Source: Marsupella aquatica
Lineage: Eukaryota; Plantae; Marchantiophyta
Direction: 5' to 3'
DNA: 16,565 nucleotides
NCBI GenBank assembly: GCA_973895155.1
Contig: CCZZQB010000057.1
Location: 1 to 16,565, forward strand
The notes beneath the pieces are model-generated. The model saw only the letters and a list, made by a program, of their open reading frames with translations. It searched no databases and was not told the DNA's origin. This document shows positions 296-15,911 of the stretch, one piece after another. Numbering within the stretch: position 1 is the first letter of the stretch; each line of letters starts with the position of its first letter. The translations under genes were made by a program, and so were the position numbers.

Positions 296-3200
296 TTATG
301 GATCCTCTATGAACTTGCTTGGCCATAATACCAAAGAACCTGCAGCATCTCCAAGTGTCTTTTGAGGAGGATCATCATTTGTGTTTGGAATGGGAAGGAC
401 AGCTTTAGGTTTCACTAGTAATGTGACTAACACTACTGAATAACCTGGGGGAATCCTCTTGCCATGGAACGTTGTGGAACCAACCTGCACTCTGGCAAAT
501 CCTACTCGTGTTCCACTCTCATCAACAGCTAACAAGCCACTTTGTCCCTCAGCATTAGGTGCTTTCCCCACTTCCACCTTAGATCTTTCTGCCAGCACTG
601 TTCTTGGAGGTTTGTATGAAACCTTTGACGTGGCTCTGCTCCCACCAGCAGACTTGCTTCGTGTGCGCATGCTTCCTCTCTTCACAGTAGTGAAGCTAGG
701 CTCAGTAGGTTCCTCTGTTAGGACTGTCACAGTAGCAGGTTCATCACCTGGGAGTGTCATACCAACTAACTCTTTGGTTGGATTTATCTCAACAAGAGGC
801 ACACCTGTCATTGAGAATGATACATTCTGCAAATCATTTATCTCTGCAATGGAGTCAAGATCTACATAGCATGAATCTGGCTCAATGGTATCATTGTCAT
901 GCTTGCTGATATCCTCATTTGCCCCAACATTGATATCATCCACTCCCTTGCCAATGTCATCCTCATCCAAACATGGTTGACTGCCCTCTGTCAAACAAGT
1001 TGCTTGTACAGACTGCAACTTTGTTGCCTCTAAATTACAGCGAGTATTTGCCAGGTTCTCATACTTCTTCTCTGTAGCACCTGTCTTATTCTCTATGGAC
1101 ACAACAACCACAATATATGTTACTGAAAATAACACATTCAACAAACAATGTCAATTCAAACTATACATTTAATAATCATATCCCACACAGTTGTAAAGGC
1201 CTTACCTTCAAGCCTACATGTCGTTGGCATGCCAGAAGAGTGCATCGACTTTGCCACCTCAAGTGGTGATGGTGGAACTCCTGCAGAATTGGAATCAATT
1301 TTATCTCTCACCGACACAACAGCTTCCATTAATGTCTTGAAGTTCACATGGAACAAGTCAGTCAATGAATTCAAACGTTCATTGATCTCTGGAAGACATG
1401 TTTCGACAGCCTTCAAACGACCACTTATCTCTGTAAGTGAAGATCCACCTCCCTACATGACACAGGGGTATAGGTTCAATCACTCCATATGAAATGTTGG
1501 GCAATATATGCACAATCAATGTTATATACAGTGTACACCTGAAATTCAACGCAGGTCATTCAATTACCAATCAGAACTCATATAACTTACATGCTTGGAG
1601 GATTCAGATGCACCCTCTTGAGCCCGGGTGTTCACAATTTCAGCCCTCAACTCTTCTTTTGAAGGGCTTTGCCCCAATTGGGCTTTCTGCACATGCATGG
1701 CAAACACAAGTTATCGATCAATATTCAGGGAACGTACACTAAAAAACAAAGTTTACATGTAGGGACAGTACACTAAAAAATAGTACATAGTGTAGCATAA
1801 ATTACATAGCTAGGCCATTCATTCTTACCAAACGTTTAGCTGTCGGTGCAGTGCCGGTCCTTCCTGTCAGATTAGGGTTCTGAACACTCAACCTGGCCTC
1901 GGTCATCTGTGAACTCTTCTTTTTTGAAGCATCTGTTACAAAATAAGCTACTAACCTTGCCCACACTTTATCATCACAACTGGCTGGTGGAGGCATATCT
2001 GGCTTCTCCCCACCTTCCTTCCAAGCCTTATGCATTCTCCACCTCTCTTGCTTGATAATTTTACCTGCTGTACTCTCTAGGCAACCTATGTCCACGCCAT
2101 CATCACTGCCCACATAATTCCATTTGGCAGCAACATTTTCACATACAGTCTTCCAATCTTTTGGATGCTGTTTTTTAAAATTAATAACACTCACATCTAA
2201 CCAACGCAATACTTCAGCTTTCAAATCAGCATGCCATCGGTTCTTGCGAGGACACTCAGCATCCACCCATTGTCTCTCATTCAACTTTACGTTCCCTTTC
2301 TTTGTCACCTCCCCTCGTGCACTGCTCTCGGTAGTACTGGGCGTTGTATTGGCCACCCCTTCATTCACCCTACCTGGGGTTCTGAAGCCACCTGGGAAAA
2401 TACAATGCCATTCATGCTTGAGAACTACATATAGCAGAATGGATGACGGCAACATTCAATGCTTCACTTCAAGAAAAATTCTTCAAACATACATACCTGT
2501 AGCTCTGCCTGTAGATGCCTGTGCAGGGACTGCACTCTGAAATTGTTGCGACCCTGGACCACCTGTCCAGCCTAGTACAGGGGCCGGATGATGTCACTTT
2601 CTAGGTATGTGTGTGCAAACATATGTACTGAAAACTAAGTACAAACTGTAGGAAAACAACTGAACATTCACCGACATACCTGTCCCCCTTCCGTGCTGCA
2701 TCTGCATAGGGGCATTAGTGAATACTTGAGTCGATGGTTCGACTGTCCAACCTGCACACATACATTTTCTATCATTATACATGTGCAGAGTCCCCCCCAC
2801 GTGAATGGACTCCACATATAATGAGTTCTTCCATTGCTGACAAGATCAGACATTACCTGCTCCTCTTCCAGCGTTTGTAGGTACTGAATTTTGATATCCC
2901 TGCCAATTACCTTCACCACCTTCCCAACCTTGTTCATTCCACGACCCACCACCATCCTCCCAACCTGGTTCAACCCATGTCTGTCCTTGTGGACATTGGA
3001 ACTGATCATTACTAGCATTTGCCCAATCAGGTTGGGCAGAATCTGCATGCAATGGCAGGTGGACAGAATTTCATGTTGTCTGAATCCAATACATCCCAAA
3101 CAATGTCAAAAATTGATATGCAGTCTGAAATTCAGGAGTGCCATGCCTTCACAAAGAACTGGCATATAGATATATACTCACATCCCCACGGTTGAGGTGG

Positions 3201-4159: not shown

Positions 4160-7100
4160 TCATGGCACAGGCACACTGTTGGCATCTGCATCTCTGAATT
4201 CGCCTCCTTCAGCAAATGCATCTACCCTTGTCACAGGAATGAAGTCCCCGCTATCATGAACTACAGGCACTTGGTCTGAACGCCGACGATCAAAGGCACT
4301 ATGAGAGTGTAAATGAAACTCAAGGTTTGATCCTTCCATCCGGCGTTGCCTGGCCTGTTTATGACACACTACACGCCAACCTGGGGAGTCTTCCACATCC
4401 AGGAAGAAAGCTTGCTCCACCTGACTAGGAAACACAAATGGCTCAGACCATTCGGGCAATTTCCCTCTGAAATTGGCCAGCAAGAAACCGTCGTTGTCTC
4501 TCTTCATGGTAGCCCTGTTACCAAGCCAATCCTGCCGCACCCATGAACCTTTCATAAGAATCACAGGACTGGACACCGCCCCATAGTCCAGAGCCCATAT
4601 GTCAACTAATTCTCCCACATATCCCATCTCCATCCAGGCCCTGTCGTGATTGTGGCTCTGTTGCTCAAATACAGTGATGAGCCCGCAGTCATTCGTCACC
4701 CTGTAGGCACTGTCACCATCCTTCACTCGGAAGTGATTCCCATATGCTCTCATCCGTTTGTAAGTCTTCACTTTCAGGCTAGGGGCATTAGACAGTAGGT
4801 AAACATCTGCATCCATGTCTGGGTGGGTCTCGTGATGCTCTCTAATTGCCACTCTGATCCACTCCATGAAACCTGGAAAAGTTGTTCCTGCAGTGGGATG
4901 GGCCGCCTTCAATGACTCATACTCCCTGAACGAACAACCACACAGCATTAGCTTGGGTAAACATGAACAGGCTGAAGGAGAAAACCACACGAACACAACA
5001 TTTAAGCTCATGAACTGGATTATAGCACATGTATGCACTCACTGTATCCAGGGTTCCATCACCACAGTGTTGTGCAATACAAAGTCATGTGCCAAGTCTC
5101 TCATAGATATGGTCAGGTTCTTTGTGGTTGCAGCCCCTTCCAGTACTTCACCTACCACCCCTTCCTCCTCATCAGAATTCCACACCCTGGTCTTCACATG
5201 CTCATATTGTGCTATGTATTCGGTCAGAAATCCCAGAGTCTCATCCTTGATGTAACCTTTAGCCATGCTTGCTTCAGGTTTGTAATATGTTCTCACGTGA
5301 CCTTTGAGTAGCTTCATGTACCGTTCCAAAGGGTACAACCAACGAGCACTCACAGGCCCAAATTGGTGTAGCTCTTCCACAACATGGACAAGTAGGTGGG
5401 TCATGACATCAAAAAATGCGGGAGGAAAATAAATCTCCAGGTCACACAGCACCTGAGCGACATCTTCTGTCAGTTGTGGGAAGTGTGTTTCATCCCAAAC
5501 CTTCACACAAATACGACGAAACACATCACTGAGTCGCATGATCACAGTACGAACAGGCTTCTGCAACAGGCCCCTCAGGCATAAAGGCAACACCTGTTGC
5601 ATCAACATATGGTAGTCATGGCTTTTCATACTACCAAGCTTTCTAGTCATGATATGCTTCTTGAAAGCACTGCCATAGTTTGAAGGAACCTTCAAAGAAC
5701 TCAACCTCTGCACAAATAGTTCCCACTCTGTGTCTGTCAGAACATAGGGCGCTTGGTACTTCAAGAGCACATCAGCTCTGTGGGCATGTGGCCTCAACCA
5801 AAGATGGGGTTTCATTCCCCTCTGTTCAAGATCCAATCTCACTGAACCAGTGTCTTTCTCTCCACACAAGAATCTGAGTAGACTCTCACAAATATTCTTT
5901 TCAATGTGCATAACATCAATGTTATGTTTGCTTGGCTCAAACTCCTGCATCGTTGCAATGCAAAAGCGTCAGGAAATGCCTCAAGTTTAGTCTCTCTCTT
6001 CGAAATGAATGCACATGCTCTGAACCAAAACATGTATCCCAATTAGCATCAACTCCAAGAGGCTTACCCTCCAGTACTTGAGCTCCAAGTCCAATATGCT
6101 CAGTCTTTTTACACCATATCGCTTTATTGGATCACTCACTCCATCTTCCCTGCCCCCTCGTTTGATATAGTCATCCCTCAGTGCTCCCCACTGCCTGATC
6201 TCCTCTTTGGTCACTCGTGCCGGGGGTCCACGTTGCTCAATCTCATTGCCAAAGTGTGCAATCAGTGCCTGTCTTTCTCTGTAAGGGTGATCTGTCTTCA
6301 GAAAACGACGATGGCCCATGTATATCACTTTCTGCAGGGCTCTGGAGTACTCACTGGTGACATTGCGCCCACAGATAGTACAAGCACAATATCCTTTTGT
6401 TGTTTGGCCTGATATCATCCCATGGGCTGGGTAGTCAGCTATAGTCAGAATGACAATGGCTCTAAGGATGAATGGGTTTAACCTCCCAAGCCTCTGTAGG
6501 ACATCATATGTGAGAACTCCTTCCTCCCAAAGCTTTCTCAATTCCTCCACTAGGGGAGCCAGAAACACATCTATGTTGGCAGATACAGCACTGTCTGGCC
6601 CTGGTATCAGTAGGACCATCAGAACAAAAAATCGCTTTGTAGTCATCCAAGGAGGAAGGTTATAATTCAAAATAGTTACAGGCCAGCATGAAAATTTGTT
6701 GTTCTTGTCTCCAAATGGGTTTACCCCATCCAATGACAGCCCAAGTCTGACATTCCTCGGCTCAGCAGCAAATTCGGGATACATCTCATCTATGAGTTTC
6801 CATTGCCTTGAATCTGCAGCATGTCGTTGTAGCCCATCATCACTTTTCTTGTCAGTTGCCCAAGTCATCATCTCCGAGATGGCACGGCTTCTGAACATCC
6901 GCTGAAGTCTGGGAATGAGTGGAAAATGACGAAGTACCTTGGCGGGAACCATAGACTTTCCTGAGTTCCGATACCTGTGCTTCCCACACTTAGGGCATGT
7001 CAACGATTCTTTATACTCCTTTCTGAAAAGAACATGCCCATCAGGACAGGCATGGATCGAATCATAGTTCAATCCAAGATTAGATATGCATCTTTTTGCC

Positions 7101-7891
7101 TCGTACATGTTCTTGGGCAAAATATTACCATCTGGTAGCACAGTTGTTCGCAAGAATGCCAACAACTCAGAAACCAAAACGTTGGGGACATTGTGGTTGC
7201 CGCAAATGTTCAGGAACATGATGACAAATCCCAGTTTAGAACATTTGCTACCGGGGTACAAAGACTTCCTGCCTTCCTGTATTTGCAGGGGAGAGCCAAA
7301 CATCCCATCATGCCCAGGGGTTTCCTGCCCTATCTCAAACTCATCAAGAGGCTCTTCGACAGGGGGCACACTTGCATCTGCAGCCGTATCCTCTTCATTG
7401 TCCAGCCCATCATGAAATGCATCCAAGTCTTGGAAGATGTCTCTCACCATCTCTTCCACATGAATTCCTTCGTCACGTGGTGCTGCCTGAGCACCATCCC
7501 GTTGGAGAGCTGACAACCCACAGAGACCAGCTACAACATTTTCAAATGCACCAGGCAGAACCTCACTTGCCCGTCTTGCAGCATTGGCAGCATCAAATTC
7601 TAACCTCCACTCCTCGTCGGAAGAATCTTCCTCTGCAGGATCATTCCAAACTCGATGTCGTGGATCTCTTCCATGAACCGCGATATGCCGCCAAACCTCA
7701 TTCAGACCCCTGGTACGGGATCCTTGGCAGATTGCACAAGGACATCTCATCCTACTGGCTCCTGAAAGTCTGGTTCGTAACCTTTCACGCTGCCAAAGCT
7801 TATTATCATGGCGTGATATCCTTGTGGGATGATGCAAAGGCAGTGCCTGTGCCCTGGGCTGGGTCTGGGGAGGGTGGTGACCAGGGTGCAT
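4160..7891 (-). CDS. TNP2: CACTA TNP2/TnpD-type DDE transposase, 3 exons: 7891-6068, 5944-5043, 4925-4160 (3492 nt, 1163 aa)
   Basis: Domain order: N-terminal transposase-associated Zn motif (RMRCPCAIC...RHIAVHG), HACPDGHVLF..CPKC, Transposase_21 core, HNIDVMHIEKN, DUF4218, DUF4216. Intron 6067-5945 (AGG|gtaagc...tgcag|GAG) joins YWR|EFEPSKHNIDVMH in frame. Intron 5042-4926 (CA|gtgagt...ttcag|G) joins PWIQ|EYESL in frame. Putative catalytic D (6728-6730), D (6434-6436), DxxH (5906-5917) and E (5324-5326) are all present. The exact start codon is uncertain. Confidence 0.93.
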
Positions 7892-8324: not shown

Positions 8325-9197
8325 TCACTCTGATTCAGAATCGCTAATGACCCATTCCTCACTTGTTGTCTCATAGTCCTCTCTGTAAGGATCCTGACCC
8401 TTCCGTGGCCAGGCCTCAAAAAGATCATAGTCCATTGGGTTTTGACGCTTCCCAGCTGCTACTGATTCCACAAGCCAAGCATATGAAACCACAAACACAT
8501 TATGGGACATGACATAAAAGCGAATGTCTCCCTTCCCAAACTTGCGGCAGGCTTTGGGATATGACTTAGTAATGACATGAGTGGTGTCCTCTGTTATATT
8601 CTCCTCCACTGTCCCACCTAGGTCAAGCACTGTGGACTTGTACACTTTGCACTTAACCTCTCCAATTCCCGCCTCCACAAATACCATGCTCAGCCCTTTC
8701 AGAATGGGGGTTGGTTGCTTCGTCTCCTCAGCCAACATACTCTTCAGCCTTGTAGAGCTCTGTCCTTTGTTGAGTACAGGTCCATATTGGAGATCAGCAA
8801 GCCGTGCCTTTGCTTCCCAGACTTCTTGTTCAGCCCAAGCTGATGCAGTAGCTTCTTCATCCTCCCACAACTCATATTGCTCAGTATCCTGTACAATCTT
8901 ATGTGCTATGGAATCTGTGATCCAAGAGGCCTCAACTACTTTTAGGCCTTGCTTAGTAATTGCAGAATTCATGTAGGACCATGACCACTTCTTTATCACT
9001 GATAGCCATGTCCCTGCAACAACATGTGTAGTCTCTGGAGTGATGTCCTGAACTACAGTGCCATGGAGCTCAGAGAATCGTTTCTGTACAGTTGGCCAAT
9101 GCACTTTGGTCAACCCATGCTGGCCATGGACCAAAATCGCTCTGACCCCTGTAAACACTGCTGGGTGGTCACACTTTCTACGTTTACCAGGCTCCAT
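8325..9197 (-). CDS. Tandem BRCT-domain protein (290 aa from ATG at 9197); BRCTs resemble the plant DNA polymerase lambda N-terminal BRCT; no polymerase domain
   Basis: Two repeats carry BRCT hallmarks (F/L.G, GG/HG.V, TTHVV/I, W+..S, terminal Y.L): VFTGVRAIL...LHGTVVQDITPETTHVV...SWITDSIAHK...YEL and ILKGLSMVFVEAGI...LGGTVEENITEDTTHVI...KFGK...YAWLVESVAAGKRQNPMDYDL. A basic GKRRK NLS-like motif precedes them. The ORF-track start at 9203 is a GTG. Confidence 0.88.
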   Translation of the reverse strand: MEPGKRRKCDHPAVFTGVRAILVHGQHGLTKVHWPTVQKRFSELHGTVVQDITPETTHVVAGTWLSVIKKWSWSYMNSAITKQGLKVVEASWITDSIAHKIVQDTEQYELWEDEEATASAWAEQEVWEAKARLADLQYGPVLNKGQSSTRLKSMLAEETKQPTPILKGLSMVFVEAGIGEVKCKVYKSTVLDLGGTVEENITEDTTHVITKSYPKACRKFGKGDIRFYVMSHNVFVVSYAWLVESVAAGKRQNPMDYDLFEAWPRKGQDPYREDYETTSEEWVISDSESE

Positions 9198-9790
9198 GTA
9201 CACACACCCTACGTGATGACAGTGAATTTTGGAAGAATGGGTTCACCTGACAATACAAGGACAACAAAATTCCTGCTTTTTGAGTTGATCTGGCCCACTG
9301 GTGCTCAGGTCCGATTTTGATAGGTACAAGGGATATGTCACACAATACGTACTAGGCACCTGCACGGATGCAGGACATTGTTTGAATATATACTACAAAA
9401 TCCATATCCGTGGTGAAATGAAGTGCAACCAACTTGTCATGGCACATACATATTTTGTTGTAAAGGAGGATACATTCAATGACAAACTTATAGGGCAATT
9501 TGATTAATTGCATGCCTGATAATTTATACGCTTACAACTTAGAAGTCCTGTTTTAATTTAGCAGTGTGATGAAAGTGTTTATGAAAATGACCACTCAGCC
9601 TAAATACTTCCAAGAAGGCTTGTAAGGATAAGTTTGTATAGGCATGTACCCAGCCACTGACGCCAGAGCACAAGATAAGTGCTGCCTATATAAACTCGCC
9701 TACCCAACTCCTTTTCAAAATTGGAATCTCTGCAATCTCAAAAAATAGTACATCCACATCAGGTGCACTGTGCATGTACAATGTTCAGCT

Positions 9791-10471
9791 TCACAGCCAA
9801 GATATGTGATCTCTCACAGGAGTGCGCGAGGTAGGATCAATGGCATGGCGATGACAATAAAATATCCATCGATCAACACCATGTGCAGAGTGATCATAGA
9901 TTTCTCTGTCACAAGCATAACCCTCTGCTTGATGATCTTTCAGGCAATGATAGTGCCACATAGTGGGACACCTAGCACAGTGGACTATGTCAGTCCAGTA
10001 GTCATCATCATGCTCACCACATGCCTTGCACCTATGAAGTGGGCAAGCTGTGGCATGAGCAGGCAAACACTCAAAACAGAAAAATCTCACACAAAAACGG
10101 TCTGGACATTTCCTAACATTTGCTGCAGCATCAACAGAGCCCTCATAGGACCCCAACTTCCCACACTGTGCACACTTAGCCTGCTTCTCCAAACAATCAG
10201 TGCACATCCAGTCTCCCTGGTGTGTTGACGGGAGGCCCACCCCTGGACAGTTGTTTTCTGCAGCAAGGTCAGACTCCGGGTTGAGGTGGAAATGCCTCAT
10301 GCAAGGGCCCTCACAAATGACCAGGCCCCCACCATCGTCACAAATGGCACAACAATGAGCTGCCTTCTGGAAAATCTGACTTGCAGAGAAGTTAGTAGCA
10401 TCTGCCCCAAGTACACCTGTGTTTCTCACCTCTGTCACACGCTTTTTGGCTTGAATTTTAGGCCGTGCCAT
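9791..10471 (-). CDS. Stand-alone EDM2-like triple PHD-finger protein (226 aa)
   Basis: CAICDDGGGLVICEGPCMRHFH...C...WMCTDC...CAQCGKLGS...C....C...C..C...CPLHRC..C...CARCP..WH.HCL...IFYCHRHAIDPTSRTPVRDHISW follows the recalled EDM2 PHD block (CAICDNGG...CEGSCLRSFH...CPLHKC...CRRCPKSYH..CL...LIYC.EHEID....TPVRDH). It lacks the EDM2 N-terminal and methyltransferase-like regions. An acceptor-like tgcgcag|G lies just before the ATG. Confidence 0.88.
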   Translation of the reverse strand: MARPKIQAKKRVTEVRNTGVLGADATNFSASQIFQKAAHCCAICDDGGGLVICEGPCMRHFHLNPESDLAAENNCPGVGLPSTHQGDWMCTDCLEKQAKCAQCGKLGSYEGSVDAAANVRKCPDRFCVRFFCFECLPAHATACPLHRCKACGEHDDDYWTDIVHCARCPTMWHYHCLKDHQAEGYACDREIYDHSAHGVDRWIFYCHRHAIDPTSRTPVRDHISWL

Positions 10472-10482
10472 GCCTGCGCATG

Positions 10483-10626
10483 AGATAGACTCTACAATTT
10501 AGCAGACTGCACAGAAAGTAATATATATTTAGCATTTAAGGTACAAAGGCATTTAGATAGACTCTACAATTTAGCAGACTGCACAGAAAGTAAAATATAT
10601 TTAGCATTTAAGGTACAAAGGCATTT
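10483..10626. repeat. Tandem duplication, 2 x 72 bp, one mismatch
   Basis: 10483-10554 and 10555-10626 (agatagactctacaatttagcagactgcacagaaagtaa[t/a]atatatttagcatttaaggtacaaaggcattt). Confidence 0.97.
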
Positions 10627-12686: not shown

Positions 12687-13026
12687 ATCTTCGAAAAGAA
12701 GCCCACCACAATTAAGAACTTTGGTATCTGGGTGAGGTATCAGAGTTGTACAGGTTATCCCAACATGTACAAGAAATATTGTGATACCACATTAAACAAC
12801 CACACAGCAGATGTATGATGAGATGGCTTCTTGTCATAGAGTTCGGTTCCCTTGCATCCAGATCATCAAGACTACGACAGTCCCTGTCTCTCTGTGCAAG
12901 CGAGAAAGTACCAAGCAGTTCCATGATTCAAAGATCAAGTTCCCCTTGACGTACCGCAAGATTCAACCTCCATCGCGAAAGCTAAAGACGACTTACAAGG
13001 CCACCAAGCCCAACACATTTGTTTGA
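12687..13026 (+). pseudogene. RPL18A: 60S ribosomal protein L18a (eL20) fragment, C-terminal about 113 codons, with a frameshift near 12798-12810
   Basis: Translates as [37 protein letters not shown] / [73 protein letters not shown], clearly plant eL20. There are 13 nt instead of 15 between the N and M codons, giving a frameshift. The N-terminal part is absent. The fragment starts at an acceptor-like taccag|ATC. Confidence 0.93.
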
Positions 13027-13484
13027 GTAGTGCGGGTGTAGGTTCCCAATTTTGAAACAATTTGGCTCATTTTATGTCCCGAGGGACTCCAGGAGTTTAT
13101 GTATTGAGTTTCTAGGTCAAGATGCTTAATATAAGGAAATTCAATTATCACCTCGTTCCCAACTTCTATTAATTGAATATACACAAGCTGGAAGCAAGAA
13201 GACAAGCCACAATCTAGCATCTTAGCCAAACACAATCGTCCCGACAAAGCAAAACTCAGCTGGACAGAAGTCACTCGGATCCACAAAAAATTGAAGATTC
13301 ACCTCCAAGCCGGAGGCCGATCACTTCAGTACAGCAGCTTCTGGACGGAACAAACTCTGCTCAGCCCCACAAAAACACAAATGTTAAGGCTCCAAGTCAG
13401 AGCTCACAAACAGAAACTCAGATAAATAACATTCAAAATCTGTCCAGGTTTGTGCAAAGTGTACATATTCATTCTTCTGGAATG

Positions 13485-14310: not shown

Positions 14311-14865
14311 AGGACTTTGGACTTGAATGAGGGACAGCGTGGCCATATAGTTATCCTTGTGGCCTTCAGCTGCGTGTCTCAGGCTGAATTTCACTTTCCA
14401 GTTTCGAGAGTTCTGAAGGTCTAGTTTTAGTAACTTCCTCCTGACTCGACTTGGGAGCATTCTCCCTATTTGCTAGCTTGTAGTTAGCTTTGACTCCTGT
14501 GAGCTTAGTTGACGACCCTCTTGAGATATTAACAATTAGAACAAACACAAGTTGTCAAGACAGATTCCACCGGAGCAAAAAGTCCAAAATCAGGTGAAAG
14601 AAAACCTAAGGAAAGTCCATAAGAACGAAAGTAGGAAGGCAGGTGCACGGGCCACCGAGAAAAGTAAAGGATGCATGTGATTAGTGGGGAGGGATCTTAG
14701 CAAAAATAGGGGAAAGCAAGGGAACTTGCTGCTAAAATCAGCTGAACGATTGCACGGTTCCTATAAATTTAGTGGACCTTAAGGCCGTCTGTTCAGCCCC
14801 CCACCCCATTGCCAGAGCACGGGGCACAAGGCATGTTCTGATACAGGGAGGAGCAAAACAGTCAT

Positions 14866-15087
14866 GTCAAGCAAGAAATGTGGAGAGACCAATCAGTAAG
14901 CAAAAATAGGGGAGAACATACATACATGATCAGCAGCAGCAGGAAACAAGAAAGATGATTTTGGGTGGCATCTTAGGGTCGGGGACACCACTGCAACACC
15001 GGGACTTAGGATATGAGTTGTTCTTAATCTGCTAGTAGCATCCGGCAGGCCGGCGACCCATGGCAAAAGGGCAGAGCAACAATCCGC
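14866..15087 (+). repeat. About 220-bp direct repeat, copy A
   Basis: Aligns by eye with 15693-15911 at roughly 85-90% identity (gtcaagcaagaa...gagagaccaatcagtaagcaaaaatagggga...caacaccgggacttaggatatga...aatccgc). Confidence 0.95.
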
Positions 15088-15637: not shown

Positions 15638-15692
15638 ACTATACTTGCAGCCACGAGGTGAGTCCGCGATAGGGGATTGAAGGAAGCAGCAA

Positions 15693-15911
15693 GTCAAGCA
15701 AGAAGCGTGGAGAGACCAATCAGTAAGCAAAAATAGGGGAGAATAGACATACATCAGCAGCAGCAGGAAACAAGAAAGATGATACTCTGTTCCATCTTAG
15801 AGTCGGGGACACTACTGCAACACCGGGACTTAGGATATGACTTGTTTTTAAACTGGAGATAGCATCCAGCAGGCCGGCGACCCATGCCAAAAGGGCAGAG
15901 CAGCAATCCGC
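15693..15911 (+). repeat. About 220-bp direct repeat, copy B
   Basis: Matches 14866-15087; the copies start 827 bp apart. Confidence 0.95.

Follow-up and report, generated by a model that had tools for sequence, protein, structure and literature searches.

A probable accessory gene for an EDM2-type PHD module in a CACTA/En-Spm transposon lineage

Results and discussion

Organisation of the locus

The window, that is the whole stretch of 16,565 nt of Marsupella aquatica DNA analysed here, contains an intact open reading frame (ORF) for a protein with three PHD fingers and, on the same strand, the genes of a CACTA/En-Spm element. The features are as follows:

10483..10626, no strand: 72-bp unit in tandem duplicate, 99% identical and in perfect register, ending 12 nt upstream of the PHD ATG
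9791..10471, minus strand: PHD ORF, 226 aa, intact from ATG to TGA
8325..9203, minus strand: two-BRCT ORF, about 290 aa from the ATG at 9197; Pfam BRCT, E 2e-13
5987..7891, minus strand: first ORF piece of a TNP2-type (TnpD-like) transposase; Transpos_assoc and Transposase_21, E 2e-70
5039..5950, minus strand: transposase continuation, DUF4218 piece; E 5e-28
4160..5038, minus strand: transposase continuation, DUF4216 piece, after the in-frame stop at 5039-5041; E 1e-4
1802..2455, minus strand: TnpA-like ORF; weak Transposase_24 match, 22.3 bits against a cut-off of 28.7
296..1144, minus strand: last ORF of the element; over its C-terminal 76 residues it shares 49% identity with an ORF of the related locus L008 that has a precomputed DUF8039 annotation

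Read 5' to 3' along the minus strand, the order is PHD ORF, two-BRCT ORF, TNP2 transposase, DUF4218, DUF4216, TnpA-like ORF and last ORF. A frame change at 5950/5987 and the in-frame stop at 5039-5041 divide the transposase into three ORFs. Its gene set (Transposase_21, DUF4218, DUF4216) is colinear with that of three related loci, L008, L009 and L011, and in all three the transposase breaks at the same domain boundaries; the breaks are probably short conserved introns rather than decay. The TnpA-like ORF is conserved in L008 and L009 at 36-45%. Named angiosperm CACTA transposases are only 37-41% identical to the transposase of the window.

In the region upstream of the PHD ORF (10.5-16.5 kb) no conservation with related loci was found at the protein level. 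Therefore, the PHD ORF is taken as the first ORF of the unit. The tandem duplication that ends shortly before its start codon may serve as leader or promoter; an acceptor-like TTTCTGTGCAG is present on the minus strand of each 72-bp unit. One copy of the PHD ORF, which is 82% identical (L001), aligns with the window only up to 10502, inside this duplication. Further upstream, a repeat of about 225 bp occurs at 14863-15087 and 15690-15911 (spacing 824-827 bp, 84-89% identical), again with no protein-level conservation in related loci, and the plus strand is rich in A over the last part of the window, from about 13 kb onward. An antisense ORF at 9770..10228(+) was rejected as a gene candidate, its apparent conservation being a by-product of the overlap with the conserved PHD ORF on the minus strand.

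Within the window, we looked for the ends of the element with repeat finders, by inspection of all CACTA/TAGTG pairs and by k-mer clustering. This yielded one weak pair only, CACTAC at 267(+) and 13032(-), which shares 14 bases with a 2-nt gap and has mismatching flanks (TCA/CGG) with no target duplication. A cluster of subterminal repeats was not found within the window either, and the ends of the element may lie outside it. In L008 the 3' region of the element (12757-13046) contains three 20-bp tandem units followed by repeated (G/A)AGTCACA, a pattern typical of CACTA subterminal repeats. Nothing comparable is present in positions 1-296 of the window; thus, the 3' end of its element may be missing or different.

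The predicted protein is a PHD module of the EDM2/NSD type

The product of the PHD ORF starts with a basic N-terminal tail, MARPKIQAKKR, followed by three Cys/His fingers of the NSD/EDM2 type, with ligand positions within residues 41-93, 100-146 and 148-209, and by the tail motif TPVRDHISWL directly before the stop. The only Pfam matches are three NSD-type PHDs in the expected order, PHD-1st_NSD (PF23011, residues 39-93), PHD_NSD (PF22908, residues 96-140) and PHDvar_NSD (PF23004, residues 148-180), all of them scoring below the gathering threshold (23.9/27, 17.9/23.9 and 23.2/27 bits, respectively). Homology to the NSD-type module holds despite these low scores, because a profile made from the transposon ORFs matches NSD2 (residues 650-794) and NSD3 in their PHD regions, at E 2e-11.

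An exhaustive phmmer search with the PHD ORF against 1.8e9 representatives gave 251 matches, and the long ones are mostly EDM2-family proteins. The EDM2-family matches have E values of 1e-16 to 1e-24 and include P0033, a protein named ENHANCED DOWNY MILDEW 2 (query 40-224 vs 239-436, E 1e-16); the Marchantia match P0020 carries the Mtase_EDM2 domain. Among the 163 proteins from the PHD searches, the RFD region of the EDM2 N-terminus was matched by 88 and the EDM2 C-terminal region by 89. By these comparisons, the PHD ORF is a homologue of the triple PHD module found in EDM2 and in NSD proteins, with a similarity far beyond what chance would produce; its identity to EDM2 is around 30-35%. Finger 1 matches AIRE PHD1 as well (E 7e-6 with the profile of transposon ORFs). 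It is 33-38% identical to the PHD fingers of AIRE, TRIM24, TRIM33 and TRIM66 (33-35% for the three TRIM proteins), and some AIRE/TRIM-type PHD fingers that resemble it have been solved with unmodified H3 peptides.

The initial annotation, made from the letters of the DNA, had read this ORF as a stand-alone copy of the EDM2 PHD module linked to a transposon, with three fingers ending precisely at the TPVRDH motif. The fingers are confirmed, the exact end is not: the ORF runs four codons further (ISWL), and the similarity to EDM2, too, extends beyond TPVRDH through RDHI..[FW], as is seen in the alignment of TPVRDHISWL with TPIRDHIRFP and TPKRDHIKFP of EDM2. That finger 2 is shortened, and that it reads FFCFEC where EDM2 has FYHPHC, was correctly noticed. 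In the alignment up to 21 residues are missing from this finger compared to EDM2, and at position 132 a Cys takes the place of the His ligand (RFFCFEC vs RFYHPHC in the EDM2-family protein P0037). The same annotation had allowed for zinc ligands that are not conserved among copies; in fact, 24 of 24 predicted ligand positions are filled in the copy of the window as well as in four other full-length copies (P0001, P0002, P0003, P0005).

The other parts of EDM2 are absent. Only 38 residues precede finger 1, and there is no RFD-like (DNMT1-RFD) domain, with zero Pfam and zero phmmer matches to the EDM2 N-terminus. Likewise, the ORF stops 4 residues past TPVRDH and has no match to the methyltransferase-like ELP / Mtase_EDM2 region of the EDM2 C-terminus. 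AlphaFold, run on an alignment of 79 modules, gave a model that is confident from residue 30 onward (pLDDT 86.9, pTM 0.81). When Foldseek was run with this model it returned just PZP domains and the NSD PHD5-C5HCH, at TM 0.2-0.3, and no solved structure spanning the whole module. As a natural minimal EDM2 PHD module of about 190 structured residues, for which a confident model exists, the protein should be useful for finding out, by biochemical and structural methods, what such a module reads.

A two-BRCT gene beside the PHD ORF

The initial annotation had overlooked the conserved two-BRCT ORF, which lies between the PHD ORF and the transposase and, in this sublineage, forms one accessory cassette with the PHD ORF. 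Its product has an acidic C-terminal tail. In the structural model (pLDDT 69) a linker of about 50 aa, helical at first and then disordered, connects two BRCT folds; the structures that match best are the tandem BRCT of LIG4, Rad4/TopBP1 and BRCA1. The ORF is found as a stand-alone gene of 271-295 aa with its own Met start in L008, P0284 and P0285; it is truncated by the contig end in L002 and absent in L003. Its position beside the PHD ORF suggests a second accessory function, and the predicted fold hints at a link to DNA-break repair.

Related loci and conservation of gene order

Transposon-type PHD ORFs (about 165-245 aa) were all obtained from unannotated Logan, JGI or ENA assemblies, and among the search matches none was found in an annotated proteome. 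A metagenome scan with the PHD alignment added one locus only, L006. In every context long enough to be informative, CACTA genes are located downstream of the PHD ORF on the same strand. L008, in which the PHD ORF is 38% identical (tblastn), has PHD, BRCT, Transposase_21, DUF4218, DUF4216-like, Transposase_24-like and last ORF, which is the order of the window. In L002 (PHD 53% identical) the PHD ORF is followed by the BRCT ORF, and in L003/L004 (44-46%) directly by the transposase N-terminus, without BRCT. Thus, the proposed linkage to a transposon is well founded, as the PHD ORF lies upstream of a full CACTA gene set on the same strand and this arrangement recurs in the divergent loci L002, L003/L004 and L008.

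L011 (ENA contig, 1-19026) is a related CACTA element, its transposase being 50% identical, and has neither PHD nor BRCT within 10 kb upstream. It was considered as a PHD-less sister lineage, which is not proven, as the N-terminus of the transposase is missing and the contig lies amid pieces of LTR retrotransposons (Ty3-type). In the JGI copy L005 (1044-1383) the C-terminus of the PHD ORF is divergent and is followed by dense ACGTCG/CGACGT motifs that resemble subterminal repeats; this copy may be a rearranged or non-autonomous derivative.

A host gene looks different. In the Marchantia EDM2 orthologue at least 4 exons encode the module, introns of about 1 kb lie between them, and the exon that bears the motif continues beyond it. 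Therefore, the intronless PHD ORF is not a captured genomic exon of that kind, and the possibility raised in the initial annotation, that it might be the EDM2-like gene of the host or one of its exons, does not hold.

Selection and gene boundaries

Between the PHD ORF and its counterpart in L001 (82% aa identity) dN/dS is 0.28 at dS 0.35. The 681 nt of the ORF are 86.9% identical with 0 gaps, compared to 53% with 36 gap columns in the upstream flank and 68% with 30 gap columns in the downstream flank. The start MARPK is kept in most copies of 37-55% identity, and the stop follows right after HISW[LI] in 7 out of 9 full-length copies examined. A splice donor at the stop was considered as a conserved feature and rejected: the window, L001, L006 and L003 have a GT that overlaps the stop, but there is none at or near the stop in L007 and L008. 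With start and stop largely conserved across copies and no conserved splice donor at the stop, the description of the gene as stand-alone can be upheld. Acceptor-like sites precede the ATGs of the PHD, BRCT and transposase ORFs, which would fit alternative splicing from a common leader, as is known for En/Spm.

Decayed or truncated PHD copies occur as well (P0008, P0009, P0010), as expected within a transposon family. Divergent copies of the transposon keep the PHD gene intact, and for this reason the gene probably serves the transposon. On the evidence of these sequence comparisons the PHD ORF is a real accessory gene of a CACTA/En-Spm lineage that is kept by selection. We consider it highly probable that this gene is functional and encodes a PHD module that is a reader only.

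Origin of the module

Two trees were calculated, one of 143 modules and a second, more careful one of 52 rows, rooted on dictyostelid PHD proteins. In the 143-module tree the transposon ORFs group in one clade (SH-aLRT 100), set off by a long branch from every protein of the EDM2 family. In the 52-row tree this clade is supported by 100/100 and appears as sister to the streptophyte EDM2 family, itself supported by 93/55, and not nested inside it; both together split from the chlorophyte/dictyostelid proteins with support 84/79. The motif TPxR[DN]H..[FW]P is present in streptophyte EDM2-family proteins (Mesotaenium, liverworts, Sphagnum, angiosperms), and TPxRDHI is shared between these proteins and the transposon ORFs. 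A tail motif of the TPxRDHI type was not found in the chlorophyte or dictyostelid relatives examined, NSD proteins being outside that comparison.

Because of the sister grouping in the tree, and because the tail motif is limited to the streptophyte EDM2 family and the transposon ORFs, it is concluded that the PHD module was taken from an EDM2-type gene of the streptophyte lineage. Its assignment to the EDM2 type, made initially from the sequence of the window, is substantiated by the same two observations. The tree, a check that the initial annotation had itself proposed, places the transposon ORFs as a separate clade and as sister to the streptophyte EDM2 family. Since they are not nested in that family, the capture seems to have taken place long ago or to have been followed by fast divergence, and is unlike a recent transduplication. 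In the description as a copy of the EDM2 module, the homology therefore stands, while the recent capture that it implied does not, the clade being old and on a long branch. Since the capture, the module seems to have been inherited together with the transposase.

Possible function and alternative explanations

EDM2 binds H3K9me2 and prevents, together with EDM3/AIPP1 and IBM2/ASI1, premature polyadenylation in heterochromatic stretches (PMC7529245, PMC9910501, PMC10852260). Furthermore, the silencing states of transposons are altered by edm2 mutations (PMC3632883). EDM2 is a host factor that lets transcription pass heterochromatic transposon insertions, and a version owned by a transposon would offer a handle on how such elements cope with H3K9me2 chromatin. 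Binding of the transposon PHD protein to histone H3 tails is rather probable, because EDM2 is reported to bind H3K9me2 and because finger 1 resembles readers of unmodified H3K4; for H3K9me2 itself, we infer binding only from the literature on EDM2. In the initial annotation three putative roles had been suggested, namely help in making the element's transcript through H3K9me2 chromatin, masking of the mark, or a dominant-negative decoy.

The protein would be made from the 5'-most ORF of the element and, like the EDM2 module, would bind H3 tails in the silent-chromatin state, in this case in the heterochromatin that the host lays on the copies of the element. Without an effector domain it would act by occupancy or as an adaptor for other proteins of the element. 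In this way the long multi-ORF transcription unit might stay expressible, which would amount to anti-silencing or to the protection of full-length transcription. In this sublineage the co-encoded two-BRCT protein may form a bridge from the reader to repair or chromatin factors of the phospho-dependent kind. A PHD reader on the silent chromatin of element copies that keeps the element expressible, by occupancy or as adaptor, is the most likely reading of the mechanism and a tentative one. To the explanation as a whole, a selected EDM2-type, reader-only accessory gene with an anti-silencing role, we assign a probability of roughly 0.45.

Several points speak against this explanation. The specificity of EDM2 is not safely transferable across 30-35% identity, a short finger 2 and the exchange of a His ligand for Cys. 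A reader that has neither an effector nor DNA-sequence specificity has no evident way to act on its own element only. To our knowledge, anti-silencing factors of transposons (VANC; TnpA of Spm) are not histone readers, and the readers that transposons do carry, such as the chromodomains of chromoviruses, serve integration targeting. The BRCT partner suggests a role at the DNA breaks of transposition rather than in transcription. Finally, terminal inverted repeats and a target-site duplication were not found within the window, so that this copy is at most a candidate for an autonomous and active element.

A close rival of the anti-silencing reading is tethering during integration or target-site choice: the PHD protein would read a histone state and, by binding the transposase, TnpA or the BRCT protein, direct excision or insertion to particular chromatin. 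Established precedents, namely the targeting roles that the chromodomain of chromoviral integrases and the RAG2 PHD have for their recombinases, are in favour of tethering, as are the co-inheritance of a reader-only module with the transposase over a deep divergence and the co-encoded two-BRCT protein, whose best structural matches LIG4, Rad4/TopBP1 and BRCA1 are DNA-repair scaffolds. However, transposons usually have their targeting module fused to the enzyme, whereas the PHD protein is a separate polypeptide, and the L003 lineage retains the PHD ORF without the BRCT ORF. We regard tethering as a possible, though rather unlikely, function. It is improbable that the PHD ORF is a 5' coding exon which splicing, perhaps alternative, joins to the BRCT ORF or the transposase to yield a PHD-fusion protein. 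CACTA elements are known for alternatively spliced transcripts from a single promoter, and both the GT overlapping the stop in the window, L001, L006 and L003 and the acceptor-like sites upstream of the BRCT and TNP2 ATGs would be compatible with such a fusion. Yet most divergent copies stop directly after HISW[LI], L007 and L008 are without a GT at or near the stop, the BRCT ORFs have their own Met start and a conserved length of 271-295 aa, and most PHD ORFs share the MARPK start.

Little probability is also left for a genome-wide decoy, which would compete with EDM2 for H3K9me2 sites, act as a dominant negative on ASI1-AIPP1-EDM2 and thereby alter polyadenylation and H3K9me2 homeostasis of the host, with no direct action on the element. 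The protein does possess the reading module of EDM2 while all the other domains are absent, and EDM2 acts through partners (PMC10852260). But with the host complex weakened, less full-length IBM1 and hence more H3K9me2 would be expected (PMC10852260), from which the element has nothing evident to gain, and the divergence from EDM2, at an identity of around 30-35%, is large. A dead captured fragment (a Pack-CACTA-type transduplicate), or a host gene that happens to adjoin a transposon, is largely refuted and very improbable. It is true that CACTA elements capture fragments of host genes (PMC13317346) and that the ends of this element were not located within the window. Against both possibilities stand the dN/dS of 0.28, the gap-free ORF between decayed flanks, the ORF boundaries and ligands kept at 37-55% identity, the same gene order in four independent divergent contexts, the single clade distinct from all host EDM2-family proteins and the introns that a host-type gene has within the module; a Pack-CACTA transduplicate is further contradicted by the presence of the full transposase gene set.

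Capture of host genes by transposons is known, and so are a few elements that encode functions in anti-silencing or targeting. In a literature search with thin cover of subscription journals and Repbase reports, we found no paper that describes an accessory PHD or BRCT gene in a CACTA element. An EDM2-type gene for a histone reader only, under purifying selection in an autonomous DNA transposon lineage, was likewise not found in the literature searched. Taking the anti-silencing reading further, a CACTA lineage might have carried, from early streptophyte evolution on, its own mimic of EDM2, the heterochromatin reader of the host, and in one branch a two-BRCT partner as well, and this 'chromatin module' might permit transcription or mobilisation within H3K9me2 heterochromatin. 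We consider this extended scenario speculative and rather doubtful. If true, it would mean counter-silencing by a transposon through mimicry of a host histone reader, a strategy undescribed for DNA transposons in the literature searched.

Comparison with known systems

With EDM2, the transposon protein shares the triple atypical PHD module, the ligand pattern and the TPxRDHI tail motif. A last finger of the type C4HC2H has been described for EDM2 and NSD1 (PMC3776765), and it is also present in the ligand pattern of the PHD ORF. EDM2 has about 1200-1600 aa, whereas the transposon protein has about 220 aa and lacks both the RFD-like N-terminal domain and the Mtase_EDM2/ELP domain. Its finger 2 is shorter, with Cys replacing a His ligand, and its gene is transposon-encoded and intronless, in contrast to the Marchantia EDM2 orthologue with its at least 4 exons over the module. 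The order of the three finger types (PHD-1st_NSD, PHD_NSD, PHDvar_NSD) is identical to that in NSD1/2/3, but in the PHD ORF these score below the Pfam gathering thresholds and have no SET or PWWP context.

Short EDM2-like proteins of liverworts, from Calypogeia (P0014) and Marchantia (P0019, P0029), are the best-scoring NCBI-annotated full-length matches (E 1e-22 to 7e-19). In P0014 and P0029 the chain ends 4-6 residues past TPxRDH, paralleling the C-terminus of the transposon ORF, whereas P0019 has about 48 further residues past this motif. All three differ from the transposon protein in that they are host proteins of 619-768 aa, consisting of an RFD-like N-terminal region and the PHD module only, and in that they cluster within the streptophyte EDM2 family, away from the transposon clade.

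The chromodomain of chromoviruses (Ty3/Gypsy) and the PHD of RAG2 resemble the proposed system in that a reader of histone marks works together with a transposition or recombination enzyme. The chromoviral chromodomain is fused to the integrase, in contrast to the stand-alone triple-PHD protein of the CACTA element, and the PHD of RAG2 is a single canonical finger that is unrelated in sequence. With VANC of the VANDAL Mutator-like elements and TnpA of En/Spm the likeness concerns the proposed function only, namely a separate accessory ORF that acts on the epigenetic state of the element (PMC5735166, PMC10398659). Neither of them has a sequence relationship to the PHD protein, and VANC binds DNA motifs of its own element, whereas the PHD protein is a module of the histone-reader type with no known DNA specificity.
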